DNA from: Takakia lepidozioides
Taxonomy: Eukaryota; Plantae; Bryophyta
Direction of reading: 5' to 3'
Assembly: GCA_030704615.1 (NCBI GenBank)
Contig: CM060733.1
Location: forward strand, 32,240,001-32,304,000
DNA length: 64,000 nt
Each line of letters starts with the position of its first letter. Within the stretch, counting starts at the first letter, position 1. The notes under the pieces are model-generated. The model was not told the origin of the DNA and made no database searches. It saw only the letters and a list, made by a program, of their open reading frames with translations. The position numbers and the translations under genes were made by a program. Below, piece after piece: positions 3,001 through 34,300 of this stretch.

Positions 3001-4791
3001 ACCGAGCCACCCTAGGAAAGGGGGAGGGAGTGGAAACGAGAGGGAGAGCCATTGTATTTTCCAAGCAAGAACTACTTGTTGGTTTATTTTTATGGTACTA
3101 AGGTTTAATTTTCAGGCCCAAAAATCCATTGCATTAGAATCTCATAGCTCTAGGAATCCATGGGGGACCTAGACTAACCATGGCTATGGTGGTAAGCTAA
3201 TCCCATTGGGGTTAGCATAGCATGCCAGTTTTTCTAAAGGTTTTTGGTGGTGTGGATTAATTCTTAAGTTGGGCAGCTTTTATTAGAGACGTCACAAGGG
3301 CAAGAGACAAGCAATAACCCAATGGCTAATGGAAGCAAGGCAAGCTCCTGCCCATGTGGGAGGCGTTGACCTCACCAAGACCAAGGAGTACAGCCACATA
3401 GGCTTGAGTTCGCGTCATTTCCTGCATTGAATTTTGCTGGCGGAGCGGTCCGTCACAAGGACCGCCGCCTGCATTCTACAGCCAATGTCTTGGCTGCATA
3501 GAGGTCTGGGACATTTGGTCCAAGGATTTTGCCTCTACCCAAGGGTATAAGTTTAAGGGGGGTCTCATACATAGGCCCCGAGGCCGATCTTTTTGTCTAT
3601 ATGAGTCATTTAGGTAGTGAATAGGCACTTCGGTACGAACATAGACACCTTGCTCATCAAAAGAGGGACAAAAGACCAATGGTTTGAGGAGAGTGGGGGA
3701 AGGGTTTGAGACGGGAAAGATGACCATTCTCACCGACAACTGGCTGTTAGCGTCTCTATAAGAGTACCCACATTTAGGATTTAATATACTTTAGCCAAAC
3801 AAGTTATGGGGATGGAGGGAGTTGACAATGGATCCCCTATTTAGCATGTGATTTGATTTGGATGGATGACTATCTGCTGGGGGGACTGAAAATTATCATC
3901 GCTAGATGAATCGCAGAGCAGCCCAGTGGGGGTTTGAACTCGAGATCTTTGGGTCTGGGATTAAGTATTGACGACCTTAACCCTAAGATGCCCAGTGAGT
4001 GGGTGTCGTTGACTTTTTTGAAAAAATCAGTCCCTTACAATGAAAAATTGAGATAGCTCGCTGGAAAATGGTGAAGGAAGCGTAAATTATGGCGTCTCTT
4101 GACCCCGAAGGGCCACTACTTTCCAGCAAGAGGTTAGACACCTTTACGACACCGATTACTAGCAAACATTAACTAACATCAATTGCTAGCATCAACAGCA
4201 AATATGTACAATCTTTGCTCAAACAACTCTCTCCCAAACTTCCCGCAATGTTCTTCAAATTCCTCAACATCACAACATGCTTAAATGTTTTATAATCCTA
4301 CGGGCCTTGCGATAGTTGGGGTTGATATCCTATCAGCACACCCGCGTGAGCATATGCTCACGTAAATACAAATCCACGGTAATTATATTTAACGACATTA
4401 TGTACTCACGCGTAAATATAATTACTCTTATATACTCGTTCTGTTTTTTTTACTGATGTCATAATTTAAAAGAATGCATGTATAGTACCAATATACTTGA
4501 ATCTTAAGACCTACATCTAAAATGTTTTTTTTAAACAATTCTTGAAAGAAGAAAAAACAATCATCGACCCGAAATCATCTCTGGGTTTCGTCACAGAAAC
4601 TCGAAACTCTAGGGTATCGCCACACTTTTAAAATACATTCAATTCCCATATAGGTTTCGCCGGTGAAATAGTCTTGAGTATTGCCAAAACAATAAATAAA
4701 TCATGAAAGAAATGTTGGGGTATTTGCTAAATTTTACGAATATATGCAATTCCTAAATAGGTCTCATAAACAAAAAAAAATGTACATGGAT

Positions 4792-6165: not shown

Positions 6166-6808
6166 TGATTGATATTATGTTAATAGAGTTATGAGTAGTG
6201 CTCAAGTTAGTACTAATCCGCGGTAATAGGGGTTATATTGTTAGATCTGGAGTAGTTTTGCAATAATTTTGGCATGAGCACATTTTTATTTTTCCGCAAT
6301 ATTTTTATATATGTTCCCAAAATTATATACGATATTTCTTTCTACAGAAGCGAGCATGCTCACTTCAACAAATTAATTGTTATCTATTTTTTCTCAGTTA
6401 GTCCAATATTTTCATGTTGATCACTATGCCTTCCGCATAGCCCGTAGTTTGAGATAAAAATTTATGTCCAAACGCAACGTCGTAGCTTTGATTGCATGGA
6501 GTTAAAGCAAAAAGTCAAGTTCCATCTATCTGGGAACTAACGAGGGCTGACCGGATGATAGACTCAATGAAGGAAAACACGATTTAATATTGACTTGAAT
6601 ATTTATATAAACAATGATCCAATTGCACACTTGTGGACCATCTAGACCGTACATACATTGGAATCCTCACCTTCTTGTTTGTCTCATGTTTCTAACTATG
6701 TAGGTGTAGAAGATCATGAGTTTCTTTGTTTTACGTTCGGAGATCGACATCAATTCATTCATGTATTAAAAATTTTGGGTGGAGTAAATGAATCCCATAT
6801 CACTGGGA

Positions 6809-6892
6809 GAGAGAGAGAGAGAGAACGCCGGCCGGGCCGGCGTAACTAAGAGCCACTTCGCCTCACGGCTACTGCCTCCTTTCGGGGGTGGG
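6809..6892 (-). mobile_element. 84-bp retrotransposed 3' end of a Dualen/RandI element with (TC)n tail and 15-bp TSD
   Basis: Flanked by the exact direct repeat cccatatcactggga (6794-6808 and 6893-6907). The insert closely matches the 3' terminus of the 12538-20025 element. Confidence 0.9.
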
Positions 6893-6995
6893 CCCATATC
6901 ACTGGGATATTATAGTTGGTTTTTGCAAATTTGAAACGCAGTATGCAAAATCTTATTTTTAGGAGCATCAAATTTCCGAAAAATCTTGCAATATC

Positions 6996-9142: not shown

Positions 9143-9193
9143 GGGGAAGAGGCTCTTATTTACATTAGCTTTGGCTGGCGTTATATATATATA
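9143..9193 (+). mobile_element. ~50-bp remnant of a Dualen/RandI 3' terminus with (TA)n tail
   Basis: ggggaagaggctcttatttacattagctttggctggcgtt(at)n matches the sense 3' end of the 23546-26052 element (ggggaagaggctcttatttacgctgactttggttggcgtc(at)n). Confidence 0.75.
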
Positions 9194-12537: not shown

Positions 12538-15500
12538 GAGAGAGAGAGAGAGAGAGAGAGAAGACTCTGGCCGAAGCCGGCGTAACTAAGAGCCATTTCG
12601 CCTTGCGGCTACTGCCCCCTTTCGGGGATGGGCCCTATAAAAAAAAAAAAATGTCCTGGGGGACACCAGGTGACCATTGAGAGTAGAGGGGGCGGTGATA
12701 TCCCTGGGTACCCTGTGGAGCCTAGCATGCGTTTGAGGTGCCGAATTCCAATTGGCATTTGTTGGTAATAATAGCTGTGAGTGAACGGAGTGCCGTGAGA
12801 TGGATTGCTTTGAAGCATTTGTGGATGGGAAGAATGGGGATTTTGAAGTTATCGTGTATAGCATTGATACTGTCGTTATGAATGCCACCCCGGGTGCCTG
12901 CGGTAATGATGGTTAACGGGCCGGTGCTCCAGCCCCGCCTTCGGATTGCAAGGATAAGCGGGGCATATTTTTGATGTTTTTCTAAGATCGAGTTGTTTGG
13001 GTAACGGTCATGGCAAAATGTGAATTCAATGAAATTGATGACGAGTTGTGGGCATGGGGAGTTGGGGGGTACACTGTTAGTGACAGGCCGTGTACAAGAA
13101 GTATGTTCGGGCAAAGCCTAGCGGGGCATGAGTATGGTGATTGGGTACATATGCATGGTAGTAGCCATGTTGGTACAGTGTGGTCTGGTGGCCGCCCTTG
13201 ATAGGTGCCCGCGTTCATGAGAAAGAACCAGCGGGTTTCAGCGCGTTTTAGAAAGAGCTTATGGAGGTGCCAGACTGCCTGGTTATGCCGTGTAATATAA
13301 AGACCATGTATGATTGGGTACATACATTGACTGAGAAGATGTGGCCAAGTGTCACGAGTTTGGTGGGTGGTTGAACATAATGGGCAGTATGGTGATGGGA
13401 ACAAATGTGGCCAGAAGATGTGTTTGCGCTGATGGCCCATGTATTGGGCATACCGGAACTTTGTCGTATTTGTGCGTCGGTAGTAGCTTTGGTTAGCCAG
13501 AAATGATTTGAGAGTTTATGGTGTAGTACATTGGATTGAGTCCATTTTTGGATGTGTACTTTGGTATGGCTGATGGAGGCTGCGGCTTGCTTGTGTGCTT
13601 CTCTGGTCAGCATGGTCAAAAGGTTACGGACTGGTCTAGGTGCAGGGGGATCCAGAACGGGGTGGATGAACCAGAAGGGGTGGGTGTGGGCGATGTGGAT
13701 AGGGTCGTTCGTGGGTATAATAGGGGGTTGGGAGGTTCCAAGTTGAGCGAAAAGGTCTGCTTCTTCATTCCCATGAATGTCAGTGTGTGAGCGGACTTTG
13801 AATGGATGGACTGGGTGTTGAAGGGAGATGGCCTTTTGAACAATGGCGGCAATGAGGTTGCGGTCGGGGTGATGATGCTGGGAAGAGAGGCGGGAGATGT
13901 GGTTTCGGATGAGATATAAGGAGGTGAGGCTGTCAGTGAAGATGCAGGGCCAGGGAGCCGAAGGGCAATACCCTGGCCACTGCCGGCGTGATAAATTCCG
14001 TACCCTGTACTAGGTTTGATGACGGATCCATCAGTATAGTGTGAGTTTGCCGGGGGATACTTAAGGGTAGTGTACTGCTGATATATAGAGGGAATGGGGG
14101 GAGGGGGTGTTGTTGGCATGTCCGGGAAGGGGCGCGGTTGCGTCGTGCCCCAGGTTTTGTTTGTCTTAATCTGAGGAGATGTGATGGCAGTGTGGACCGT
14201 GTGGGGGGGGGTGTAGCTGGGTGATGGATGGTGGCCTTTATTTTATGAGTGTTGGTTAGCAACTGTTCGAGCTGGTGGAAAAAGGGTGTCAGGATGTCTG
14301 TATGGAGGGGGTGTTGTATGTGTAAAATCAAGGTAAGGGTAGGTTCATTCCGTTTGAGGTACTCGGGAAGAGGGGGGGTATGGACATATTTAAGTTGATT
14401 TGGGTCAATTGTGGCGAGCAGATTAACCCCTATTGGGAGGCATAGGAGAGGATGAGAGGTGCTAGGTGTGTTTTGTTGTGTAAGAATGAGAATTGTGGAG
14501 GCATAAGGAGAAGAGTGAGCTGCAAATCTTGCCCATTGGAGAGCTTCGTGAGTGAGGGGCCAGAGGGGGGGGGTGAGTGAGGCCCCTACCTTCCCAGATG
14601 TGTTGGGTATCACTACCCGTAGCTCCAAAGATACAGTCTCTGTGATGTGGGCTTGAGAATGTGTGTAAGTCCATAGGGCATGCCAGTGGACTGGAGTAAT
14701 ACGAGTGGGTAAGCTGAAATGTGTTGATGAGTAAGGCAAGAATATCCTGTGGTATGTGCGCATGCCGTTTCGAGTCTGGCGATGGATCGTGGTTTCTTGG
14801 GGGCGGTGTCTTTGAGGTATCGGTCAACAAGCCAATATAATTCGGTAGCAAAGTCTTGTTTCGGGGGTTGTAGGAAGTGTGAGTGTGCGTTTGTAGTAGA
14901 ATACTTTTCCCAGAGCCATGTCAGTTGATTGTTGGGGATGATCCCAATGAAGCGGCCGTGTTGGGCATAGATATTGGAGCTTTGATGCGTTGTGGCTGTG
15001 ATAGCGCACTTGTGTAGACTGAGCTCCATACCTGACCATAGATTGAATCTGGATAATTTGGTGACTTGGCGGTTTAAGTGTTGTGGTTTATGTGCGAGGA
15101 TAGCGAGATCATCTGCATATGCGGCGGCTGAGATGTCGTTGGAGGAGGTTTTGTATTGATACCTGAGATTACCACGGGCAAGCCATCGGAGCAGAGGTTC
15201 TAGGAAGATAATGAATAGATAGGGGCTTAAGGTGTCCCCTTGGATAGTGCCTCGGAGAAGGGGAATAGGTGGGGTGGAGCCATAGTATGCGCCAAAGTAT
15301 TCAGTGGTGCTGTTTGTGTATATGTTGCCTATAAGTTGAACGACATCAGTGGGGTATCCAAGGTCGAGCATGATGGAGAGTAATCTAGCATGATTGAGGG
15401 AGCCGAAGGCATTTTTAAAGTCAATGTATAATAAATATATATCTTGTTTTATAAGTTTGGCGTCTTCGAGGGCGGATATGACATATTGGATTTGTCGAGT

Positions 15501-18500
15501 TGTACTGCGTGTGGCGCGAAATCCTTCTTGAGGGTCGCTGAGAATTTGGTGTTGTTCCCCGTAGCTGGACATCATTGTGGTAAGCATGCTAGTAAATAAT
15601 TTGTAGATGGTGTTGGCCAATGCAATGGGTCTGTAGTTGCTGAGATCCGTAGGGTCACCTTTTTTAAAGAGTAAAATGGTATGGCTATGTTTCCAGGAGT
15701 GTGGTATACGTTGTAGTTTGTAACAGAGTTGGAAGAATTTGTAGAGGAGGTGGTGTAGTTGAGGGTCCAATGCTTGAAGTATGGAATTTGGTATAAGGTT
15801 AGGTCCCGGGGCTTTAGATTTAGATAATTTCTTAAGACCTGATTCGTAGAGATCAATTGTGAATAGGTCGAGGATTCGATCTGTTGGAGAGCCTCTATTT
15901 TTGAGTGAGAAGCCAACTATATCATGCCATGGGTAGTGTTTAACTTTGCACATACATTTGGTAGTATGGAGATTGGGATGTAGACAGTTTGAAACTGTGG
16001 GTGTGTAGGTTGCGGATGCTTGTGACCATATTTCCTGGTTGATGTCCACAGGGTTGGTTAGCACGTGGCCGTGCCGGTGTTTGAGACAGTCGATGGGAGG
16101 GTTGAGGGTGGGGTTGAAGATGGCTTTGTGAGCTTTTTTGGGATGGTCGTGTAGCAATTGATTAAAAGAGGAGACAAATTTCTTGTGGTTGTCGGTAGCT
16201 TTTTGTTTGGTGATACTGTCAGCGGTTTTCTTAGCCTCCCTTCCAGCTTTGGAGAGAGCAGCAATCCAATTAGGAATGTCTTCGGGGTTGGTAGGTGGGG
16301 GCATGAGTGCGTGGCATGCTGTTAGGGTATTTAGGCAGGTGATACGTGGATCTGTTGCCCAGTTATTCCTTGGGTGTATGGAGGTAGTGGTAGGAATAAT
16401 AGTAAGGCGCGTCTTATCGTGTGGTATGTGTTAAGATGTGATGTCCATGTACGTTTCTGTGTGCGAGTAAGGTAGCCGCCATTATGTTTAGAGCGCATAG
16501 TTTGCGGGATTTCGGGAGGGGCAGAGCAGGTGGCAATGACACTTTTGGTCATTTCTTGTATTGAAGCTGTGAGTATGAGTTCGGCTTCGGTCCAGGCCTT
16601 GTCGGGGAATTGTGCAAAGTTTGCCTCGGAGAGTATGGCTGAGGGTTTTACCACAAGGTGTGAAGATGTTGGTTGGAAGTGTTTGAGAAAGGTGGCTATG
16701 CTACGTTGGGGAAGCGGGGACAATATTTCTAGAGTGGGGTGATGGGGCAGGTATGGGTGGATTAGGCCTGAAGGGAATGAGGGATGGTGGGAAGGTGACA
16801 GATACAGGGTAGTGATCTGAGTTGCATAAGCTATTGATGTGTACGTGACTATGAAGGTATGTTGGGATCTCAGTTGGTGGTTTTAGGTAGAAGCCGTCGA
16901 GAAGGCTTAAGGAGGAGTAGTTAAGTCCACCTTGTCTAGAGTAGTGGTGGTCGGCGGGGAGGTATCGGAGGTGGTGTGAGTGAGTAAATTTTGCCCATTC
17001 ATGGTCTACTAAGGATGGGGGCTTATGTGTATCATTGTATGTATGGCCCGTGAGGGCAATGTCTCTGTTGAAGTCGCCTGCTAAAATGTAGTGCTGGGAG
17101 TGGGTCGAGGGTTGGGTGAGTGTGTTGGAAATGGTGAGCAGTATATCAGGGTTCAAGGGGAGGTCATCAGTGTGTGAGGGCATATACAGTGTATGAGGGT
17201 AATGGGGGAGAGCGCGGGAAGGTGTAATTTGATTATTTGGAGGTGTGATTGGGGGGGGGGGGGGGGGGGGGGGACAGTGTTTTGACCGTGTACAAGGAGA
17301 GTGATGTGTGCGTAGGATACCGAAAGCCACCCCTCCTCGGGTGAGATGGTACGGCGCGGAACGCCTGGTAAGGCATTGTGCAGCTGTAAACGAGTGGTAC
17401 GAAGGGAGGAGTTTGTTGATATATGAGCTAGTGGGGTTGTGTGTGTTGAGTTTAGTTTCTTGTAGTATTATGATATGTGGGGATGTAGAGTCTGTGAGGT
17501 GGATTAGGCTTTGAATACTGGTGGCAAGTGATCCTACATTCCAAATGGTGATGCTGAGTGAATGTGCTTGTTGGGAGGGGGAGGTTGTGGGGACCTAGGG
17601 GATCTAGGGGGTGGGGTTCTAGGGGCGGGCAATCTGATGGGGTTGTGTGCATTGGGTGGGGGGGTAGGTGAAAATGGCGTGGTCTGGGGTTGGTATCCAA
17701 GGATGACTGTATTGGCTTGCAGGGTGGCAGCGAGAATGTCTCAGGAGAGAAATGGGAATTTGTTGGTAATATTATCTAGTGTTTGTGTGGTACCAGTTGG
17801 GTGGGCCAGGTATTCACCTAGTAGTTTGTGGGCTTCTCCAGGCTTGGATTGTAGCAGGTTAGAGATTCGTGGAGGTCGTGGAGGTAGTGTGGGGGTGCTA
17901 GGTAGATATGGGGTAGTGTGGGTAGATTATGCAGTTGATATAGTAGTGAGCTTACGTGACTGTCTGATTGAGTCCTGAGGTAGTCGTTGCATATGGAGGG
18001 TATTGGGGAGATGATAATGATTAATGAGAATAGGAGGTGTTGTATAGGGTATGCGATGAGTGCCTGGGTGGCATTGACTAGGAAGGAGTTTTGGTAGGCT
18101 GGGAATCCAAAGGTGGCAATTGGGTGTGTAGATTTACGGTTATTGGCAAAAGAGTGGGGGAGAAAGGGGGCGAAGTGGTCACTTAGGTGCTGATATGCAG
18201 GGACAAGTGATACTGTGTCTCTTTGGAAATATAACTCATATCTTTCGTGATGGTCCTTGGGAAGATTGTTAATGATGCTAGTGATGGTAGAGGGGCCCTA
18301 GTTTGGGTGAATGTCGCCACAAGGTAGGAGTATAAGTGTTTCACAAGCAAGTTTATAGGACGCAAAGTGGGACGGTGGGTGGTGAGAGGAGTGATTGGAG
18401 GCCAGAGGTTTTTGGTGGTATCTCCCATGGGGGTAGTGGGTTATGAGGTGGTTCTTAAGGGGCCAGGGAGTAGGGGTGTAGGGGAGATAGTTGGTAAGAA

Positions 18501-20025
18501 AATGTATGTTGGGAGGGGATTTGGTGTCGCCGTAGTGGGTATGAGTGGAGCTAGTTGTGGGTGTGTGTGCGGGTGGTTGTATTGTGGTTAGATTTGGGCG
18601 GGGTTCCATCATGTGTCCGCGGAAGTGGCTCCGTAGGGTTTTGTGTTTAGCGGTGGGTGTGGGTATTAGATGGGAGAAAGAAAGAGAGGTGGGTGGGTCA
18701 CGGAGATGGATTGAGTTGGGCAAAGGTGCGAATGTGGGTACTTTCAAATGGGCTAAGTAACGGTTATGGGTGGGTGGGGGTGAGTTTGGGGGCTTAGGCT
18801 AGAGGGGGCTAGGCAGCATATGATAGATTGGGGCATTTGGCGAGTGGGCGGGTGGGGAGTACGTGGGATAGTATTTGGTTTAGGGGAGAAGATGCTTCTG
18901 TATATGAGATGTTGAGATAGACGGGGTTTGGATGTGGGGGTCCATTTGCTAGGTCCACTGGCGCAGCAGTACGGGAGAGGGTAGATAGCATGGTAGTACA
19001 TAATTGGAGGTGGATAAATATGTGACGGGGGATTTTGAAGGAGGGGGGGTATGAAATATTCTGATTGGGGAGTAAAAGAGGATGTTAAGTACCGGACGGA
19101 TGGCATCTAGATGGAGCTCGGTTGAGAAGGGGCGTGATAGGAGGAAACGGCGGAGGCAGTTAATGTATTGTGATATAGTTGGATGCAGCCACCGTGCTGG
19201 GAGGAATTGGGGGTTGGGTAGGATGGGTGAATCCGTAGGGGTATATTGGGAAGGGTGGGGATGGATGAGAATGGTGGCGTGGGGATGGATGAGGGGGTCG
19301 GCGGGGAGTTGTGTTGAGTGCGGGAGATGTACGTGTTATTGTTGTTTATGGTAGGTATGTAGGGAGTGGGAATGCGGGTGACAAGGTATAGGCATGTTTG
19401 GGGAGTCCGTAGACCGGAGCATAGGCAGGGGGGGCGGGGTGTATAGGTTGATTTTTGTACTTAACCGGGGGATGGTGGGGAGGGGGGGGGGAAGGTAGTT
19501 TTGTGGGGGTGAAATATATAGGGGTAACCAAGCCTGGGTTGGGTGACGACTAGCTATATGATAAGAGAGAGTATGTGGTTTTTTTTAGGACTGGCGTGGG
19601 GGGTAGATATGGTACGAGGGATAAGTATGGTAGATATGGTACGGGGTGTATACGGCAGGTAGGGCAGTTAAGTGGGTAGAACGCGCTTTTGGGGCGGCCT
19701 GGATGATTCGGGGATGTTGTCATTAAGGTGATAGCAACCCGTGGGAGCTGCGGCGGGCTGGTAGGATTTGAATTTGTGGCATTGGTTGGGGGGGGGGGGT
19801 ATACGTGGCGCCGTAAGGTGTGGCAAAGATGTAATGGCGGAGTTGGTGCGATTGTGACACATGTGGCAGGGAGGGGAAAACGTGCAATAGTGTTGTCTAC
19901 GATCGACAATCCAAGAGGGATCGGGCTTGTGATGGTGTGAGACGGGGCGATCCTGAGAGTGCAGAGGGTGTAGTGTGGGGGTACAGAATAAGTGACAAGA
20001 GGAGTTGAACTTAGTGAGTGCAGAG
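12538..20025 (-). mobile_element. Dualen/RandI-type non-LTR retrotransposon, copy A (~7.5 kb, decayed): APE - RT - PCIF1-like MTase - RNase H - CCHC - RLE
   Basis: APE: SITIWNVGSL..PHIIILQETK..GGVA..LAGDFN..SDHYPV (~16790-17565). RT: KAPGPN..NYRPIAL..QEGFR..YIDFKNAF..RGTIQGDTLSPYLF..AYADDL (~14990-15830). RNase H: YTDGS..IFTDSL..KVRSH..GNEEAD (~13740-14050). CCHC: CPLC..HLLSQC..TRHN. RLE: RLCPNILL..FIEFTFCHD..KHQKYAPL (~12750-13130). (TC)n tail at 12538-12560. Candidate TSD cttata(ta)n-t[a/g]gta at 12505-12537 and 20026-20042. Several frameshifts and internal deletions. Confidence 0.85.
14613..16304 (-). pseudogene. Longest surviving reading frame of Dualen copy A (RT domain, then a deletion junction into the PCIF1-like region)
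   Basis: 563-aa ORF with non-LTR RT motifs up to KC. The usual YLG/thumb segment is absent, consistent with an internal deletion. Confidence 0.8.
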
Positions 20026-20186: not shown

Positions 20187-22823
20187 TGTTGAAACGCTCA
20201 GCTGTTCATATTCAACTATATGGTGGTGTTAATTCCAATACCTTAAGTGATCTAAATAGCTCCATAGTAATAGTGTCTGTCCAATATCCACTAGATCTAC
20301 GATCATGAGCCTAGGTGTGGACTGCCTCAACACCCTCTCTCCAACATACTTCTCCTTTGTGATTATCTTGAGCATCTTGCAAGTTATGGCACATGTACGA
20401 AAGACCGCTCGCTCTGGTCCACAAATATTGAGAGGAAAGACTGTGCCCTTGAGTGAAAGACCAAAAGTTGACCCCCTTTGCAAGGTTGCCGAAGACTTGT
20501 CTATAGTGGTATGAATCTGGGATTGAGAGTTCTATGGACAATCCTACAGGAGCATACTGTTCTACTGAGTATTTGTATATTAAATGCTCTACTGGTTATT
20601 CTACTGGTCATTCTGCTGATACTTCATTCTATCTACCCTATCCTATTTCTGATTGAGGGAAGAAGATCTATTAATTGATTGGGAAGATTTTAGCATTCAC
20701 GAGTAGAGCACTTTTTGTTGGTTGATTACTTGTTGTAGGCTGACTAATCCTAGAGCATCTCTGAAATGGACAAACTTTTGTTTCCCTAAGGGTTTTGTGA
20801 ACATATCAGCAAGTTGACTCTCAGATGCAACATGGTCTAAGTCTACTTCTCCCTTTAGTATTTTCTCTCTGATGAAGTGGTAATGCACCTCTATACTTAG
20901 TACGCACGTGAAACATTGGATTGTTCGCCAATTTGATAGCACTGGAATTATCACACCAAAGTTGGGCTGCCTTACCAATGAGGAAGCCTTCCTGAGTGAG
21001 AGTTTGCAACCACATTGACTATTTGGTACCTTCAGTTATAGCTCGATAATCCGCTCGGTTGACAACAATGATATTGATGGTTGTCTCTTGCTCGACCATG
21101 CTACAGGCGACCCCCCAAGGCGGAACACAAATCCAAACGTAGATCGTCTCATTTCTTGATCACCTGCCAATTTGCGTCTACAAACCCGTCCAAACCTGTT
21201 CGTCCTTCCGCATAAAACATTAATCCATAATCCATGGTTCCCTTTAGGTAACAAAATATCCTTTTGACTGCCTCCGTGTGAGACTTTTGAGGTGCTGACA
21301 TAAATCTACTTACCTCCCCTACAACGTAGCAAATGTCTGGCCGTGGATTTGCCAAATAGATCAACTTTCCTACCATCTTTTGATACAAAAGCTCATCTGC
21401 TCGCTCCTCGATGTCAGCAATTACTTTCAAGTTCTCAACCATGGGAGTTGGGCTTGTGTTGCATTCACTAAGACCTAGCTCCTTGAGCATGGCTTGTCTT
21501 TGGGATCCACGTGTCGGAGTAAATGGCCCCTTTCCAGGGCACTGACGCCAATAATGCCCTGACTTTCCATACTTGTGGCAAACACCTCGAAATTGTGGTT
21601 GCATGGAGAGCCGTGGTTAGATGATCCAGTCCTCCGATTGTTTAGCAATGTGCGAAATCGAACCAACAACGCTTCCTCGTCGTTAAAACGACGATTCTTG
21701 TGAATGGCAAGTCGAGTCTGCTGATGACTTGAACAAATGGAGTGTAGCTCTCTGCGAGAGCATTGATTACTTGCTCGATCAACAATGATTTCATCAGCAG
21801 GAGTTGCATCAATCTCTGCCATCTGATTCAAGATCAGGCTCTTTACGTCCACCACGAACTTTTCCACCGAAGCTCTTTCCTCCATCTTCAGCTGGCTAAA
21901 TTTGTTGTGAATCATGAGACGTTGTTCATTGTTTTTGGTGCCATAGAGACCCTGCAGAAGTTCCCAGAACTCTCAGTGACCTGCACAATGTAAGGAATGA
22001 TGTGGTCCCTGACGGATAACTTCAGTATGGCCAAAGCCTTGCGCTTGAGTTTCTTCATCATATTTTCGTTGAGATCAGCCTTGTCCTCGGTAGCTGCTGC
22101 GTCGGTAGTAAGCTCAAGGAGGTCCCAGAGGTCCTCTTTCTCCAACACGGTCTGCTCGACTTAAATTTCCATAGGGGACAGTTGCTTGCACCATCCAGCT
22201 TGTTAGATTCGGAAATGGAGTATTCAAGAGTAGTAGCCATGATGATTCAATCACTACAGTCACTTCTCTAGGATGGAGGAATAAGCAGGTAGGATCAGAA
22301 TGAAAAAGAATTTAATGCCAAAACAAGATGATAGTAACAAGGTAAAAAAACAAGATAATGAGGATCAGATTTTTGTCACACAAATATGTATAATGTGCAG
22401 GAAAACCAAAGTCGATGCTATATAATCTCGAAACGAAAGATCTATAGATCTTGAGTCTGGTCTTAGGACACTCTTCCACTCTCTTTCATAGAAGGAGCAA
22501 CGTTCACAACGAAAGATCTATCTTGAGTCTGGTCATAGGTCGACACTCTTCCAAGTGCTATCTTTCACAGAAGGAGCAGCAGTCACTTAGTCACTAATCT
22601 CTCTTGTGGAGCAACGCTCACATAATCACCAAGGAACTAACCTGGGTGTTACCCCCTAACAAGGCTCTGATACCATGTTGAAACACTCAGTTGTTCATAT
22701 TCAACTACATGGGTGTGTTAATTCCAATACCTAAATGATCTAAATGGCTGCATAATAATAGTGTCTATCCTCCAATATCCACTAGATCTACGATCATGAG
22801 CCTAGGTGTGGACTGCCTCAACA
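20187..22823 (-). mobile_element. Internally deleted Ty1/Copia LTR retrotransposon (2637 bp)
   Basis: LTRs at 20187-20332 and 22676-22823 (tgttg...caaca); 5-bp TSD gtttc; Met-i PBS tggtatcagagcc (22663-22675, minus strand); PPT next to the 3' LTR. Gag (KLDGASNCPLWKFK, CHKYGKSGHYWRQC), RT C-terminus (RPDICYVVGEVSRFMSAP) and RNase H (WSSKRQ, CDNSSAIKLANNPMFH, QLADMFTKPL) are present. Confidence 0.95.
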
Positions 22824-23545: not shown

Positions 23546-26052
23546 TATATATATATATATATATATGACGCCAACCAAAGTCAGCGTAAATAAGAGCCTC
23601 TTCCCCTTGCAGGTATGCCCCCTTTTGGGGGTGGGCTCTATATGTAGCTCGGCTTACTGCGTGCCCAATTGGCCGCTTTCGATCTTACGTTTGTTTAAGA
23701 GATCGGATGGTTGTATAGTGGAGGGTACGTAGTAGGGTAGTTGTAGCTGTATGAGGTAGGTTCAGGTGTTGGTTTAGGGCATCAATGTTGTGGCTATGGG
23801 CTCCTCCTCTTACACCCGCAGTAATAATTGTAAGTGGGGTGGTGTGCCAGCCGTGTTGGCGGAGGGCCAAAATGAGTGGTTTGTATTTTTCGTGTTTGCG
23901 GTGGATTGCTTGATCTGGGTAATGGTCATGACAGAACATGAACTCAATTAAGTGGATAGTAATGGAGGGGCGTGGGCCTGTCGGTGGTGCGGATGAGATA
24001 GGGAGCCCTTGTGCAAGTAGTATGTCGGGACGTAGTCTAGATGGGCAGTGGCATGGGTAGGCATTGCATGAGCAGGTAGGAGCCAATGGGGACTGTAATG
24101 TTGTCTGGTGGTCTTCCCTGGTATGTGCCTGCATTAATTAGGTTGAACCATCTAGAGTTAGGGTGTGATAGGAGTAGTTTTTGGAGGTGCCATATTTCTT
24201 GGTTGTGTCGAGTCCATGCAATATAGATTGTTTGTAATGACGTAGAAGATGTGGCCACGTGTCGACCCGAGGTGGTTGGCTGTAGCACATAGTGCAATGT
24301 TTATTAGGGTAAAGAACTGGCCAGAACAAGTTGCGTCTTTGATTGCCCATATATATTATATTGTCCATAGCGGAATCGGAGTGTTTGCCTGATTTGGGCG
24401 TCAGTAATTTTAACAGATGTCCAAAATTGATTGGATATGCTATGCAAGAGTGTGGGGAGGCGACCCATTTGGAGATATACGAGTTTGTGTAGGTGCGGGA
24501 TGCTTGAATTTGTTCTTTGGTTTCACCCGCGATGAATGTATGTAGGTCTCTGATGGGTGCATTGTCTAGTTGTGTGCTTTTAGTGGAGGATAGCCAAAAA
24601 GGATAGGTATTCGCTATGTGGATCGGGTTGTTTGAGGTTTGGGAAGTAGGTTGGGTAACGCCGAGTTGTGCTAGTTGGTCTGCCACTTCATTTCTTTTGA
24701 TATTTGTGTGGGAGTGGACCTTGTGTAGGTGTATGTGTAATTTGGATGAAGATATGATATCAATGATTGCTTTGATGAGCTGGAGTAAGGCGTCATGTAT
24801 AGCCATGAGTTCTGCACGTAAGATGTTTTGTCTTCCAGGAAGGCGTTTGTATATTTGGGTATTATTGGCAACATTGTACATTCCGTATCCCGCATGTCCG
24901 TCCTTGAGGGAGCCATCTGTGTATATGCATTGCAGTGGGTTAAATTTTAAAAGCGAAGTCCCGAGTGTTATATTCTGGGGGCGGTGGTACATGTAAAAGG
25001 TTTGATGTTGTCCAAGGTTGTTGCGGGGGTGTCGCTTGCCATCACTTGTTTGGGTTGATCCTAGGATATCGGGGGAGGGAGAGTAAGGGTGTGTGTACTG
25101 TGGCAGTTGGGCCGAATAAGCGTTTTAGTATGATGCTCAGGTTCGAGAGGAAGATATTGGATATTTGTGGGTCTTGTTATGGTGGACACATACTAGCTTA
25201 GTTAAGGAGGGTTCTGGGTAGGACATGTACTTTGGCATGGGTGGGGGGTTATCATAGATCAATGTTTGCGGGTCGAATATGGCCATTGTGAATATTCCTG
25301 CAGGGTTTGTCAAGATGGGGTGGTCGCTATTGGTCAGATTGTTGTGTGGGATTAATAAAACAGTAAATGCATTTGTGGATGCATGTGCAGCTATGCGGGC
25401 CCAGTGTAACGCTTCGCCAACTGTGGAGATGTCAGGGGGGTGAGCGAATCCACGTCCTTGCCATTGGTAGGATCTTGCCTGCCCTAGCGAGCCAAAACAT
25501 TGATCAGCTTCATATGGGCTAAAGTAGGTAGTGGCTCGTAGTGGGCATGTGAGGGGGTTGGAGTAGTATGAGTGGGTGAGTTGTAGCTTTGTAGCAAGAA
25601 AATCAAGGAGGGTAGTGGGGAGTGTTGAGTGGGAGTGTGCAGTGTTAAGTTTGCTTGTTGTTGGGGGGCATTTGGGAGGGAGATCTTTCATGTAGTGTTG
25701 CAGCATTCTAGATGTTTCAAGGGCAATGGTCGTGGCTAGGTTTTGGGCATTGAGTCCCTTATGTTTAGGGTTTTGTCGGAATTTGGTCTAGAGCCATGTC
25801 AGTCTGTTGAGTGATATGCTTCCAACATAGAATCCTAATGGTCCGTAAATATGGGCCGTCAGAGTGTGTTTGAATATGGGGGTCGGTTTTTGCAATGTCT
25901 TTGTCTGGGTTGCATTCCACGGTTGAGATATGGATGTTCGTCAAAGTTTCTTGGGGGGCGTATGTAGCAATTGTCCTTGGGTTGTGGTTCTGTAGCATGT
26001 TGTTGGTGGGTATGTGTTAGATATGTGGTATTGGTACGTCTGTGGTAGTCGA
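23546..26052 (-). mobile_element. Dualen/RandI-type non-LTR retrotransposon, copy B (5'-truncated, divergent family): PCIF1-like MTase - RNase H - CCHC - RLE
   Basis: 10-bp TSD tgtgaagtta (23536-23545 and 26053-26062); (TA)n tail at 23546-23566. RNase H: YTDGS..RAELMAI..KVHSH..NEVADQLA. CCHC: HCTMC..DTWPHLL..TRHN. RLE: RLRPDILL..LIEFMFCHD..RKHEKYKPL (ORF 23685..24134). Colinear with copy A. Confidence 0.9.
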
Positions 26053-28391: not shown

Positions 28392-31300
28392 TCAGCCACA
28401 CCTCCTGCTTTGATAAGACTCAAGTAAATGAGCTCTCTCCTCCTTAAGCTTCAGCTCAAATAAGAGTGCTGCTGCATGCTGCTGCCGTTTGAATGCCATG
28501 CGCCGCTCATGGTGCTGTTGTTGGAGCTTGACACGCTGGGCTTCATAAGCTTCAGCGTCCCGGAGGCTCCCTTCCACCATCTCTGTCTGCCTTGCTATCT
28601 CTTCCTTCCTACATGTCAAGTGATTTGATTTCACTCATAGTGTTCACATGAAAGTTTGTTGATTAGAAGTAAACTTTGGTGGATTGTAATAAGCACATTG
28701 AAGCTCTGGTGACTTCACTAAACCTTGAAGTTCCTCGAGTTCCTAAGGAGCTTCAAATGTCCATGGGAAGCTTCTCCTCTTAGTGAAAAACTTCAGCAAG
28801 GAATTGGCGTCCCCAAATAGACGATGATATATACCATGGATCTCGTAGTAGAGAGCACAGTGAAATAAAAAATGTTCTTAGGTCTCTCTCCCGTCTGCTC
28901 TAGTGCGAGAAGGGCACAAGTGGTCATCACGCTCCAGGTTATCCCATCTACCAGTCTCAGTCCCCTAACGGCCGTGGAGATAGAGCTGCAGACTGTTGGA
29001 AAACCACTGGCGTGTGGTCGGGCTAGGGATTGAACCTAGGACCTCCCCCATTCCGGTGGGGTGCTCTACCACTGAGCTACCCGTCCCTTTCTGTTCTCAG
29101 AGTGACGTGCAAGGGCTATAGCCTTGACACCTCCAACACTCCCCCTCAAGGCATAGCCCTTATAGCTGATGCCCACCCATTCTGACCACCGCCCCAACCT
29201 TGGCTCTGATACCATGTTGAAAAACCACTGGCGTGTGGTCGGGCTAGGGATTGAACCTAGGACCTCCCCCATTCCGGTGGGGTGCTCTACCACTGAGCTA
29301 CCCGTCCCTTTCTGTTCTCAGAGTGACGTGCAAGGGCTATAGCCTTGACACCTCCAACACAGACAACTAATTGGGCTGTAGGGACCTAGGACCAGGAAGG
29401 CTGTTGTGGCAGAACTACAGTTTTGGAGTAAGATTCTGTACTTTCAAGGTCAAGCTGAACACGAAGTTTCATCAGCTCCTGTCCAATAAACTTGCAATGG
29501 TCAAGTTTGGAAGAACTTTTCAACTGTTGTAGCAGTAGGGATGCGAAGGATAAGCCATGTTGCTTAAAGAACATGGAGACCCGAGCATACCAACAGGTCT
29601 TTCAACCAAGACTGAAGGATGTGAGGGCACGACCTGGCGACCACTTTGGGGAAGAGATCGCACGAAAGAAAGAAAGAAATTTATTACGTATGTGCAGCCC
29701 AAAGTGTCCGAGATCATGCGTAGAATGAGAGTAGAACCAGCAGAAAGCACAAGTACTTCTCAAATTCACAAATGGCAACAAGCTACAAAGAAATATACTT
29801 AAGAGAGTTTTGTTTCTACAATATTAGTGGGGAAGCACAGACATCAATGAGCAACTCAGACTGCTGTACAAGTGTATAGGAAGGAAAAACAAGAAAGAAG
29901 AGAGAGAGTACAAGGCCTGTTGTTCTTGCTGTTCATCCATGGAAAGGCCAGTGTTCTTGGGAATGTCCCTGTGCTTCACTTCCAGCTGCTGGCATTGTTG
30001 CAAATGTGTTGCTTCAAATTTCTCTCTCAAATTCTGCAGCTGTATCTCCTTCTGACTGACCTCATCCATCATCTGATCCCTCTCAACTCTGAAGAACTCT
30101 TCCAGGTCGACTTGCTGCATGCAACCCACACAATCATAGGTTGCATCAAATGTACATTTTCTTTGTATGCAGAACCTTATTAATTTGGATCTCTATATGG
30201 GAAAAATACAAAACTAGGCATTCATTAGAATCACTCAAGCTTACCTCCTGTTTGTTTCTGGAATGTTGCTCCTCAGCACGGCCCCGGAGGATCTGGAGCT
30301 CTTGCTCACGTAACTGCAAATTGCGGGAAACCACACTCACAGTTCTCTTCAGAGTTTTACAGACTTCCTTCTCTTGGTCCACCTTAGTCTGCAGGCGCAG
30401 CACTTGCTGCTTGTCTGTGTGCATGTGCTGCAGTGGCTTCACCACCATCTCTTGCAATTTCTTCAGCTCATACTTCAACACTGTTTTCCCTGCCATAGCA
30501 CCACATCTGGGTCATCACAGTCCTGTTACAATAAGTTTGTCACCAAGAGTACTAAACAATCCCTCTTTCATCAAGAAAAAGAGTTGATTGAAGCGCAGCA
30601 TTAACTGGATATCATGACGTCAGCTACTGCTACCATAGCCCTCTATCCTATATGCAAATGGTAATATGTGGCTGTGCTACACCCTCAGTCACACTGTAGA
30701 GGAACAAGGCCCTCTGGATAGCAGAAGTTTGGCATGTCACTGTGAGGCTACACTCTTCCCTCATACTCCTGACTGGCAGGAGTATGAAATATTGTTACAC
30801 AACATGTCTGGAAATTTTGCTTGAAATTACTGACTGATGTAAGAACAAAAGGAACATGCACCTTTGCAATGTCTGTTGAAGATCTCAATGTCTTCTTTGT
30901 CAGCCATGTAGCCATAAAGAATGCGGCTACCACCACTCCCTGGGTGAAAGAGGAGTTTGCCTGGAGAGTCCCAATTTTCTCTTCCACGCCTCACATCTTT
31001 GAAGTGCTTGTCGAGACGTTGGGCATCATGGTACCCAGTGGGAGACTCTCCAAACACCAGCAGGCTCATGCCACGGTGACCTTGGGGCCCATAAGCATGC
31101 CGAGGCTTCTTGGGATTGTATTCCTTGAAGTAGTCTAGCAGCTCTTTGTTACCCATGCCTAGCCACTGCATTTAAAAATCCACTGTCAACCTTTTCAGAT
31201 AATGCTATGTGCAGTCTTGGGTCTCAAAGCTATACCCAATCGACAAGTTTAAGAGAGGTGGAAGACTCATAAGCCTCATTTGTCTCACGAAAGTACAAAA

Positions 31301-34300
31301 TGTACCCTAGAGAGCTCAAAATACTGATATACAGAAACATTCATCTGCAATCGAAGGACTGAGAAGAGGTTCCGGCGGTAGTAACCTGACAATGAACTAT
31401 GCATCATCCCACATTACACATTTTGGGTCTGCCTTTGTTTGTTTGTTTGCATACCTTTTCTTCATCATCAAGCTCCAACTTTGTGTTTTGAATGACAACC
31501 ATGGGTGGCCATACAATCAAGGCATCTTGTGCTTCACTGTCATTATGAAGCCCTGTCCATTTGCCAAACATGCTCCCTCCAATACTTAGGCTTGCTCCTT
31601 GCAGCCGCAATTCTTCCTCCAAAACTTCTGCGAACTTGCAATGCAGCTTCACTCGCCTTGATCTTGTAGTCTGTGCATGGGCAAGAAGAGGCCCCAAACC
31701 CTTGAACCAATCAATGGCACCCACACCACCCTTGCAGACAGGGCAGTGCCACTGCCGGCCTAGATCATTCACCTGCTTCGCATCCAAGCAATCCATTTCC
31801 TGAAAGAAGTCGCGGAACCATTTGACCTTCTTTTGGGTGTCGTGACTCTTCTCTGTTGAATCTGAGTCCCAATCCTCGTCACTCACAAAGGCATAATCAC
31901 TATCGTCTTCTAGATCATCCAGGTCCGAGCACTGGCTGTCTGAGTGGACATTGACTGGGTAGTGATCATACAGAGGTGTCCCATCCTCAGCTTGCAGAAA
32001 AGGAATCCCACCAGTGGGGCCATCTGACACAGTTGGATGACAAAGTTGAGTGAGTTGGCATAAATGGTATGGAATTGAAGCATGCACCCCTGAACTCTTG
32101 CCATTTGTACGATGTGGTGACTGTAACAGTATTTATTGAAGCAATGATCTTCTAATTGGGTTGGAAGAGAATTGATGCAGCTACACTGGTATGAACCATG
32201 CTCTACATATTAGACATCCACGACAATGTCATATGCTTAATGTCAAGAGTACCTGCACGCTGTTCGATAGAAATTTGAACCTCCTCTGCCGGTAAAAGCT
32301 TCTGGAATATGGCTGCAGTATCTACCTTGGACCCTGGCTTCAAGGTGCTGCTGTTTGGTTTAGAGCTGGCAACATCTGATTGATTGTGAACACCTACATT
32401 CTGCAAACCATTTTCAAGATGAGTTGCCAGACCCCGCCCTTTGACATTTTCCCATCCATTGTCTCGTGTCGGTCCCCCTGTGGATGAACCTTGCTGTCTT
32501 CTAGTCCGAACCTGTCCTTTTGGTGTCACAGGGGCACTTGCCCCACCCAATCTTCTACCATTGACCTCAAGGTCAACCCTTCCCAAGGCCTCCATCTTTG
32601 CATTTTGATTCTTCTCTTGCATTCTATTGTTCTGGAATTTCCCTCTCCCTGCTTGTGTTTGTGGTGGATCTCGTGGTGGATCTGAGCTCTTTCCTCTACC
32701 TTTAGTCACTGTTTTCCACCCTGCATCACTTGCCATGTGTTCAAGTGAGGCTTTCCCATTCTGTGGATGGCCCTTCCCCCCAGGCAGGTATAATCCATTT
32801 CCGGCAATCCCTAGACCTCCATCATTTGCCTTGCCACGTGTATCTGTACCACCAAGAATTTTCCCTGAATTCCTCGCTGGCACAGGGGACCATTCATTGC
32901 TGTCCACATGCAAGGGTTTGGAGTCCCATCCCTTGACCAGTCCATCCCATCCATCTGTAAAGGAGGGACCTGCAGTAAGTGCGCGTCTGTCAAACTCATG
33001 AAGAACGCAGCCACACACAGCTTCCCATGCAATTGTGGCTTCTGCATGTTATCTTGTTATTTTGGGCTGCCGCAGGTTATCTCAAACTCAAGAAAAACCC
33101 AGCAACACAGCTTCCCAAGTGATTGTGGCTTCTGCAGAGTCTCATTATGACTGCCACAGGATAGAGGGTGACAGAGCCATGTGATTGGTACAACTGAAGT
33201 GCAGCCCCGAACTTATGCAGGTGGACTATACTGCTTTATCTGGATGAGTTTTGCACTGGCAATAAGTACATCGAGACATTAATTAGTGCACAGAAAGTGC
33301 AAACATGCACTATCCGAGAAGGTTGATTGCTGCTACAGCATTGTAAAGCTCCCAAGAAATTTGGGTTGACTGCTTAGAAGCTAGTGTCAAAGTAAAAGCA
33401 CAATTTCCTACTCATAACCATTTCAGAAGGAAAGACATCACACACATCAACTTGCAAATTAGTGGGCCTCATGATGAAGACAACAGTTTCTACCTGCATC
33501 TGTGTGCCAACCAGAAGGCACTGGGGATGATGACACAGTGACTGTACTCAGCTTCTGAGCATACTGCATGCCCTTTCGGCCGTGGGCAGAATCTCCAGCC
33601 TCCCAATCTGAGACTCTCATACTGCTTTCACCTTGAGCTGGGCTGCTAGATAGGTCTTGCAAATGCAGGATACCATTTGCATCCGACACTCCATGACTAT
33701 GTCCTGACCATGTCACCAAGTGAAGATTAGAAGTCTCGCTCTTTAAAAATTTCAGGGGAGGGAAAATTATACCATGCCTTTTGCTTTGTGCCTCCCAAGC
33801 AATGCCTCACTATTCTGGTCAGTCCAGGACTTGCACTCTTTGACATGGGGCGCCATATCTCTTGACTCATCACCTCGCCTGGAAAGGTATCTCCAGAATA
33901 TTGGGTTGTCGATTGATAACCAGAGGGACCAATTCACGAAATGCGTGTGGTTCAAGAAAGTGCGACTAAGAAGTGATATGTTCAAACAACCAGCCTGAGA
34001 GAATCCTTTTACAATGTCTTACCAGTTGATCCTCCTCCACTAGCTTGTTGACCGTTCTCTCCTTTGCTTAGTGCCTTATTGAATGAGGAGTCGCTGTCAC
34101 GTGCCCCTTTCTTCCCCTTCTTCTTTTTCTTGTGCTTTGTTTTCTTTATCTCTCTCTCTGGAGAGTCAGCCTTAGGTCGGCCTGTCCAGCCATTCATTTC
34201 ATGCTCTTCTTCAACCTGGCTGGCCCATGACAACTTGGCACCTAACTGCGATGTTGAGGGGCAGCCCGAATCAATGCCCTTACTTTCTTCCAATACCACC

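Follow-up and report, generated by a model that had tools for sequence, protein, structure and literature searches.

Long interspersed nuclear elements (LINEs) are usually described as encoding an endonuclease, a reverse transcriptase (RT) and sometimes an RNase H. A 64,000-nucleotide stretch of the genome of Takakia lepidozioides (GenBank assembly GCA_030704615.1, contig CM060733.1, positions 32,240,001 to 32,304,000; hereafter the window) holds two decayed LINEs, copies A and B, each carrying in addition a domain that resembles the methyltransferase (MTase) PCIF1/CAPAM. What is this domain, to what kind of element does it belong, and what might it do there? We find that the domain of copy B (25140-25787) is homologous to the MTase domain of PCIF1/CAPAM; a conserved PCIF1-type fold in this deep-branching group of LINEs is an added module.

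An earlier note on this DNA had quoted a series of minus-strand peptides from copy B, a stop directly after ...TWL and the tetrapeptide HPPD at 25431-25442, all of which are present in the translation. The domain also lies where the note had drawn it (25170-25870), although its proper limits differ and the upper one given there takes in the last RT residues. The domain and its blocks are as follows.

25140-25787, minus strand: PCIF1-like domain of copy B, 216 amino acids, predicted class-I MTase fold (Pfam, AlphaFold2, Foldseek, VIA-align), with a folded core of roughly residues 14-202
25692-25712, minus strand: N-terminal helix with the R-Y pair of the family, H-Y in copy B (hidden Markov model (HMM) alignment to 6irx/6irv, family alignment)
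25548-25577, minus strand: motif-I-like block THSYYSNPLT, the counterpart of ...FASPLN in PCIF1
25491-25505, minus strand: D-x-x-F-G block (D95, F98, G99), aligned to D-G-Y-F-G of PCIF1
25431-25442, minus strand: motif IV position, with HPPD replacing NPPF

Homology of the domain to PCIF1

The Pfam family PF12237 matches copy B with an E value of 2.6e-7 and a score of 30.8 bits, against a curated cut-off of 31.1 bits. Intact relatives, which are public metagenome proteins, score 34-66 bits and hence exceed this cut-off. Although PF12237 is named PCIF1_WW, it matches the part that aligns structurally to the MTase domain of PCIF1. When the Protein Data Bank (PDB; 177,635 sequences) was searched with a profile of 53 aligned relatives (alignment A4), PCIF1 alone was found, with E values of 1.3e-7 for the zebrafish protein and 1.5e-6 for the human one; PDB searches with a single sequence or a three-row profile returned nothing relevant.

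Comparisons of structure gave the same picture. The AlphaFold2 model of the domain, built on A4, has a pLDDT of 86.2 and a pTM of 0.81. With this model as query, Foldseek listed six PCIF1/CAPAM entries first (E 5e-7 to 1e-4), followed by MTases of the KsgA/Dim1 type. VIA-align superposed the model on residues 449-662 of human PCIF1 with a Z score of 14.0 and a root-mean-square deviation of 3.4 Å over 190 residues; all six PCIF1 entries scored between 12.1 and 14.0, compared to 10.8 for the best non-PCIF1 family. Of the 30 clusters closest to the domain in the ESM Atlas by language-model features, 29 belong to PF12237, and this search also turned up short PCIF1-like proteins from giant viruses and haptophytes; by shape, the nearest were chlorophyte PCIF1_WW proteins (TM score 0.75) and arthropod proteins with WW and PCIF1_WW (0.73). 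The N-terminal R-Y helix of group-2 MTases also aligns in the domain family, both in the HMM comparison and in the family alignment. These data bear out the PCIF1/CAPAM-type Rossmann N6-adenine-MTase fold suggested in the earlier note.

The similarity is confined to the MTase core. No Pfam match to a WW domain was found in copy B, in which RT sequence lies directly upstream of the domain, and the helical cap-binding domain of PCIF1 has no counterpart, the model aligning solely to the human segment given above (domain boundaries from PMC13290413 and PMC9178792). As modelled, the domain is a bare MTase core, a class-I (Rossmann) fold of ~190 residues without these two flanking domains. Because both are absent, cap specificity cannot be inferred, and what stands of the cap/adenine MTase first envisaged is its MTase core.

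The carrier LINEs and their family

With a profile built from both window copies (A3), an exhaustive search of 1.84 billion cluster representatives yielded 307 proteins at E ≤ 1e-3, 84 at E ≤ 1e-10 and 10 at E ≤ 1e-30, and PCIF1_WW lies upstream of RNase_H in every match with enough downstream sequence. Protein P0119 (2146 amino acids), which is intact on an 8.5-kb metagenome contig after a 281-residue first open reading frame (ORF1), has RVT_1 at residues 584-871, PCIF1_WW at 1342-1479 (49 bits) and RNase_H at 1642-1781. The order is the same in P0129, while P0142 shows PCIF1_WW followed by RNase_H, with no RT detected. The PCIF1-like domain is an old component found family-wide, its place between RT and RNase H being fixed. 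The idea that this particular LINE, or this genome, had captured it must therefore be given up, since the domain is found in 307 representatives and always upstream of RNase H.

The remaining domains identify the carrier. A clear apurinic/apyrimidinic-type endonuclease (APE) is found in P0170 (Exo_endo_phos, E 7.6e-11), and the APE matches of P0162 and P0119 are weak; RT and RNase H occur together in P0119, P0129 and P0162. In an alignment of C-terminal regions, the window copies and relatives share a CCHC zinc knuckle followed by the motifs (R/K)PD, I-E-x-x-x-C-x-D and K-x-x-Y-x-x-L. When a model of this region from P0007 (residues 450-708) was compared with the PDB, the top matches were R2 retrotransposon proteins only (E 4e-6 to 2e-3), as for a restriction-like endonuclease (RLE). 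Pfam scans of the window copies and relatives gave no tyrosine recombinase. An APE and an R2-like RLE combined with RT and RNase H define the Dualen/RandI architecture (PMC4640811, PMC5029228). Judged by domain architecture, then, the carrier is a Dualen/RandI-type LINE, in agreement with the assignment made in the earlier note.

Copy B is truncated within the end of the RT region, and what remains is a single frame that runs through the RT tail, the PCIF1-like domain, RNase H, CCHC and RLE. Its other features are listed here.

23575-25898, minus strand: copy B, a 5'-truncated, decayed LINE of Dualen/RandI type by architecture (tblastn of intact relatives covers 23754-25898; 3' tail similarity)
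25788-25790, 25137-25139, 25125-25127 and 24138-24140, minus strand: four internal in-frame stops, the first of them the TAG directly after ...TWL
24141-24992, minus strand: RNase H domain, linker and CCHC zinc knuckle (Pfam RNase_H, E 4e-11; alignment)
24234-24296, minus strand: the CCHC itself, its last Cys replaced by Tyr
23688-24134, minus strand: RLE domain, 49% identical to the C-terminus of P0007
24015-24038, 23925-23948 and 23874-23897, minus strand: RLE motifs RPD, I-E-F..C.D and K..KY..L, respectively
23685-23687, minus strand: TAA, end of the frame

Copy A is the longer of the two and has the following parts.

12544-20000 (upper bound approximate), minus strand: copy A, a frameshifted LINE of a different family, ~40% identical to copy B (Pfam, tblastn)
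16701-17330, minus strand: APE (Exo_endo_phos_2, E 1.8e-4, weak)
14613-16304, minus strand: RT (RVT_1, E 1e-30)
14179-14851, minus strand: PCIF1-like domain (PF12237, E 8e-4, first half only)
13616-14119, minus strand: RNase H
12722-13440, minus strand: CCHC and RLE

The PCIF1-like domains of the two copies are ~40% identical, and the conserved blocks are kept in both. That of copy A is broken by a frameshift within nine consecutive C of the coding strand (a G run at ~14565-14573 on the plus strand), directly after H-P-P (14567-14578). Because copies A and B are both dead, the domain has no present function in the window, and any role must be sought in intact elements elsewhere. The sequencing runs surveyed gave DNA data only and no evidence from RNA.

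Several observations concern these LINEs more generally. The 3'-terminal 50-90 bases of copy A (12544-12640) and copy B (23575-23642) are 81% similar, and two orphan tails, at 6807-6895 and 9143-9193 (the latter inverted), are 81-88% similar to these 3' ends. The coding strand comprises 12.6% G and 37.1% C in copy A (12560-20000) and 14.4% G and 32.5% C in copy B, compared to ~22% of each in the rest of the window; an intact relative on a metagenome contig (L001:1955-8395) has 17% G and 32% C. Such G-poor, C-rich coding strands yield proteins rich in Pro, Thr, His and Ser.

Some relatives carry further modules. P0162 (4799 amino acids; in a 90% cluster with P0147, P0160 and P0164) contains an OTU domain (1548-1663), a weak APE (~1921-2121), RT (2524-2745), a PHD finger (3259-3310), a PCIF1-like domain with N-P-E-Y (3493-3640), a C5 cytosine DNA-methylase segment (3871-3932) covering profile positions 57-113 only, RNase H (4193-4327) and an RLE-like C-terminus (~4615-4705). 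It is, in other words, a LINE with two different nucleic-acid methylase-type domains and a histone reader. P0126 likewise combines a PHD finger with the PCIF1-like domain and RNase H. P0001 (444 amino acids), the best match to the window profile, has a chromodomain (E 4e-9; residues 1-26, N-terminally cut) just upstream of the PCIF1-like domain; none was found at the equivalent place in the window copies. The ORF1 that precedes P0119 (L001:579-1424, plus strand, 281 residues) gives a weak Josephin match with an E value of 1.3e-4, under the cut-off. Different cysteine-protease or deubiquitinase folds seem to recur in this group of LINEs: Josephin, OTU in P0162, and the C48 peptidase reported for cryptophyte Dualen.

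In Joint Genome Institute (JGI) metagenome contigs (L002-L008; P0151/P0002), a 5'-truncated copy with the PCIF1-like domain, RNase H, CCHC and RLE forms a fully open ORF of 749 amino acids. This copy is identical in 12 contigs from several samples and adjoins an unrelated APE-RT LINE on the opposite strand. P0002 and P0151 represent the same locus and differ by a 34-residue in-frame indel, a deletion in one allele between the MTase domain and RNase H, plus three substitutions in the 3' portion; other pairs of relative clusters differ by 1-5 residues. The open truncated copy could be a young insertion.

Constraint, motif IV and possible roles

From N- to C-terminus, the family consensus consists of a helix ending in R-Y, then H-S-Y-[FY]-S-S-P-[LIV]-T, Y-x-S-P, R-D-x-I-F-G-S-x-G and K-W-x-G-x-G-x-A-H-P; the PCIF1 counterparts include ...RRY, ...F-A-S-P-L-N and D-G-Y-F-G-S-R-G. 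Both the motif-I-like and the D-x-x-F-G blocks are retained. For the latter, D is found in 126 of 142 sequences, F in 131 of 140 and G in 118 of 140. In A4, whose 53 members are 17-41% identical to copy B, seven residues (D95, F98, G99, W109, G111, W129 and A130) are at least 90% conserved. Between copy B and P0151, identity is 42% in the MTase domain, 42% in RLE and 31% in RNase H. Because key residues are conserved at low overall identity, and because the MTase domain is as similar as RLE and more similar than RNase H, the PCIF1-like domain is, on this comparison of sequences, under purifying selection in active lineages. Conservation across intact family members, which the earlier note would have expected to be poor had its reading been wrong, is thus substantial.

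The picture at motif IV is different in kind. Coordinates and profile alignment agree that HPPD has replaced NPPF in copy B, as the earlier note had it. Across the family, the position of PCIF1 N553 is occupied by H in 85 of 136 sequences, by Y in 13 and by N in 10; P follows in 101 of 133 sequences, and the two positions after it are variable. In the profile alignment a-h-p-p faces A-N-P-P of PCIF1, and the stacking F556 of PCIF1 is an insertion relative to the family profile. The intact long ORFs read HPPV (P0119), HPTT (P0129) and HPPT (P0142), while other lineages have NPPL (P0169/P0115), NPE-Y-E (P0162, P0148, P0150) or SPAE (P0126). The canonical catalytic tetrapeptide, (N/D)PP(F/Y/W), is found neither in copy B (HPPD) nor in copy A (HPP running into the frameshift) nor in the family consensus (A-H-P-x). 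As far as motifs can tell, the plant-type lineage, to which both window copies belong, lacks both motif IV hallmarks of N6-adenine MTases: an Asn or Asp to hold the amino group of the target and an aromatic residue to stack on the base. What has taken their place, A-H-P, is nonetheless conserved in this lineage.

What, then, might the domain do in an intact element? We think it probable, from its motifs and by analogy with known proteins, that it is a pseudo-methyltransferase without catalytic activity, able to bind nucleic acid and perhaps S-adenosylmethionine (SAM). We favour this because N-P-P-F has become A-H-P-x without the stacking aromatic, while the elements on the cofactor side, the R-Y helix and the fold have been kept. 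The domain would hold the element RNA, or the hybrid of RNA and complementary DNA (cDNA), between polymerase and RNase H during target-primed reverse transcription; SAM or S-adenosylhomocysteine might serve as a structural ligand. Its role could be comparable to those of METTL14, fly Pcif1 and the MTase domain of DIRS1. Non-catalytic partners, METTL14 with its EPPL among them, are recognised by a degenerate motif IV. Insect Pcif1 has lost its catalytic activity but still functions (PMC10158991), and the DIRS1 domain, a member of the PCIF1 clade, was predicted to be inactive, its proposed role being either to bind template transcripts or to mimic PCIF1 (PMC4738411).

Three points weigh against a non-catalytic role. 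First, a specific His is conserved together with residues on the cofactor side, which indicates a constrained pocket and would be compatible with an enzyme that still works but has unusual chemistry or acts on an unusual substrate. Second, related lineages retain N (NPPL, NPEY) and may be active, the inactivity of the His lineage being read from motifs. One further caveat is that D-x-x-F-G is placed on the cofactor side by position and analogy.

The strongest competitor is an active enzyme: in intact elements the domain might methylate N6 of adenine, or another position, on the RNA of the element itself (close to the 5' end, for instance), on nascent cDNA or at the insertion site, with His serving in place of Asn. 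We regard this as possible but unlikely. In its favour, the cofactor-side residues and A-H-P are conserved rather than randomly decayed, and sister lineages retain NPPL or NPEY. In some of them the domain occurs alongside a PHD finger and a segment of a C5 DNA methylase, or alongside a chromodomain, in what resembles a module for modifying nucleic acid or chromatin. Adenine in DNA is also an in vitro substrate of PCIF1 itself (PMC9178792). On the other hand, the stacking aromatic is absent, the fourth position of motif IV varies freely, and the helical cap-binding domain of PCIF1 is missing. Moreover, we know of no active N6-adenine MTase with His at the first position of motif IV. The analogous DIRS1 domains, finally, were judged inactive (PMC4738411).

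More doubtful still is a broader proposal, that Dualen LINEs encode, between RT and RNase H, a working module for modifying nucleic acid, which during retrotransposition would mark the RNA of the element, its newly made cDNA or the insertion site. Its core would be a PCIF1-type N6-adenine MTase, to which some lineages would add a C5 DNA methylase along with either a PHD finger or a chromodomain. If true, this would be the first epitranscriptomic or epigenetic writer encoded by a LINE, and the His-type domain of land-plant elements would be a non-canonical enzyme or a reader derived from one.

It is improbable that the domain is simply a structural spacer, a "connection" domain that binds neither cofactor nor base and for which MTase ancestry is irrelevant. 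The place between RT and RNase H does resemble, by analogy, that of the retroviral connection subdomain, and the catalytic motif is degenerate. However, the best-conserved residues (D-x-x-F-G, S-S-P-L, A-H-P) lie on the pocket side and not just in the hydrophobic core, which is unexpected for a pure spacer. Three further readings, a similarity due to chance or composition, a fragment of a host PCIF1 gene picked up by this one copy and a DIRS1-type element, are refuted by these results: the G-poor, C-rich coding strand does skew amino-acid content and copy B falls 0.3 bit below the Pfam cut-off, but four independent kinds of test (Pfam, PDB profile, fold comparison and Atlas) agree; two window copies ~40% identical to each other carry the domain, as do 307 relatives with it at the same position; and the order RT, MTase, RNase H, with APE and R2-like RLE and without tyrosine recombinase, is not the RT, RNase H, MTase of DIRS1.

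A pseudo-methyltransferase that grips nucleic acid is hence the reading that we prefer, and nature has supplied variants with which it can be examined. NPPL, NPEY and HPPx domains could be used to ask whether these proteins write N6-methyladenosine (m6A) or N6-methyldeoxyadenosine (6mA) on element RNA or DNA, or only hold nucleic acid.

Surroundings, novelty and known systems

The window contains other candidate coding regions. An exon-like ORF at 31404-32087 (minus strand) gives weak matches to XS (E 9e-5) and zf-XS (E 4e-3), as in plant RNA-silencing proteins of the SGS3/IDN2 type. Coiled-coil-like ORFs at 28392-30496, on the same strand as the XS-like ORF, have no Pfam match. Between the LINE copies, at 20697-21604 (minus strand), are ORFs that resemble, by reading only, the C-terminal part of a Ty1/copia polyprotein, with no Pfam match at E ≤ 0.01.

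How new is a PCIF1-type domain in such an element? Our literature search found no paper naming both PCIF1 and Dualen, and the papers that mention Dualen together with a methyltransferase do not describe this domain. The earlier note's claim that the domain is undescribed in Dualen elements holds to this extent. The novelty is nevertheless narrower than first thought, because a PCIF1-clade domain in a retrotransposon was already known from DIRS1 (Iyer, Zhang and Aravind 2016, PMC4738411). Automated Pfam annotation, too, already labels intact relatives with the PCIF1-like domain. What is new is a PCIF1-type domain in Dualen LINEs, rather than a retrotransposon-borne PCIF1-clade domain as such. 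This makes a second, independent-looking case, after DIRS1, of a PCIF1-like domain kept by retrotransposons. There is also a warning for annotation: a PF12237 match in a plant or algal genome often marks a fragment of a LINE and not a PCIF1 gene.

Four known systems invite comparison. With PCIF1/CAPAM (PDB 6IRV-6IS0, PF12237), the only PDB family found by sequence profile, the domain shares the MTase core fold, the R-Y helix, [F/Y]-[A/S]-S-P-L, D-x-x-F-G and the strand-4 motif A-x-P-P, in like order and with like spacing. It differs in lacking the WW and helical domains, in having HPPD for NPPF and in being embedded in the second ORF of a LINE.

As regards Dualen/RandI, the shared features are APE, RT, RNase H and the C-terminal CCHC and RLE, along with a cysteine protease in relatives (OTU in P0162, a weak Josephin match in the ORF1 on L001). 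The domain list of Kojima and Fujiwara (2005) reportedly names no PCIF1-like domain. Published Dualen domains comprise APE, RT, RNase H, RLE, cysteine protease and CCHC, with a SET methyltransferase listed for cryptophyte Dualen (PMC5029228); the PCIF1-like domain, by contrast, is absent from these lists.

The MTase domain of DIRS1 likewise belongs to the PCIF1 clade and forms part of a retrotransposon polyprotein; its catalytic residues are substituted, and it is presumed not to act as an enzyme (PMC4738411). Unlike DIRS1, the Dualen element is a LINE with APE and RLE and without tyrosine recombinase, and its MTase domain precedes RNase H, whereas that of DIRS1 follows it. The structural neighbours in the Atlas include animal RT/RNase H clusters, whose DIRS-type identity is a guess, with a TM score of 0.60; the window domain is closer in structure to cellular PCIF1 (0.73-0.75) than to these.

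METTL14 (EPPL) and insect Pcif1 resemble the Dualen domain in that the fold and the binding of nucleic acid or partners are kept while the catalytic tetrapeptide is degenerate. They are cellular proteins that work with partners, whereas the Dualen domain is a module of a retrotransposon enzyme.

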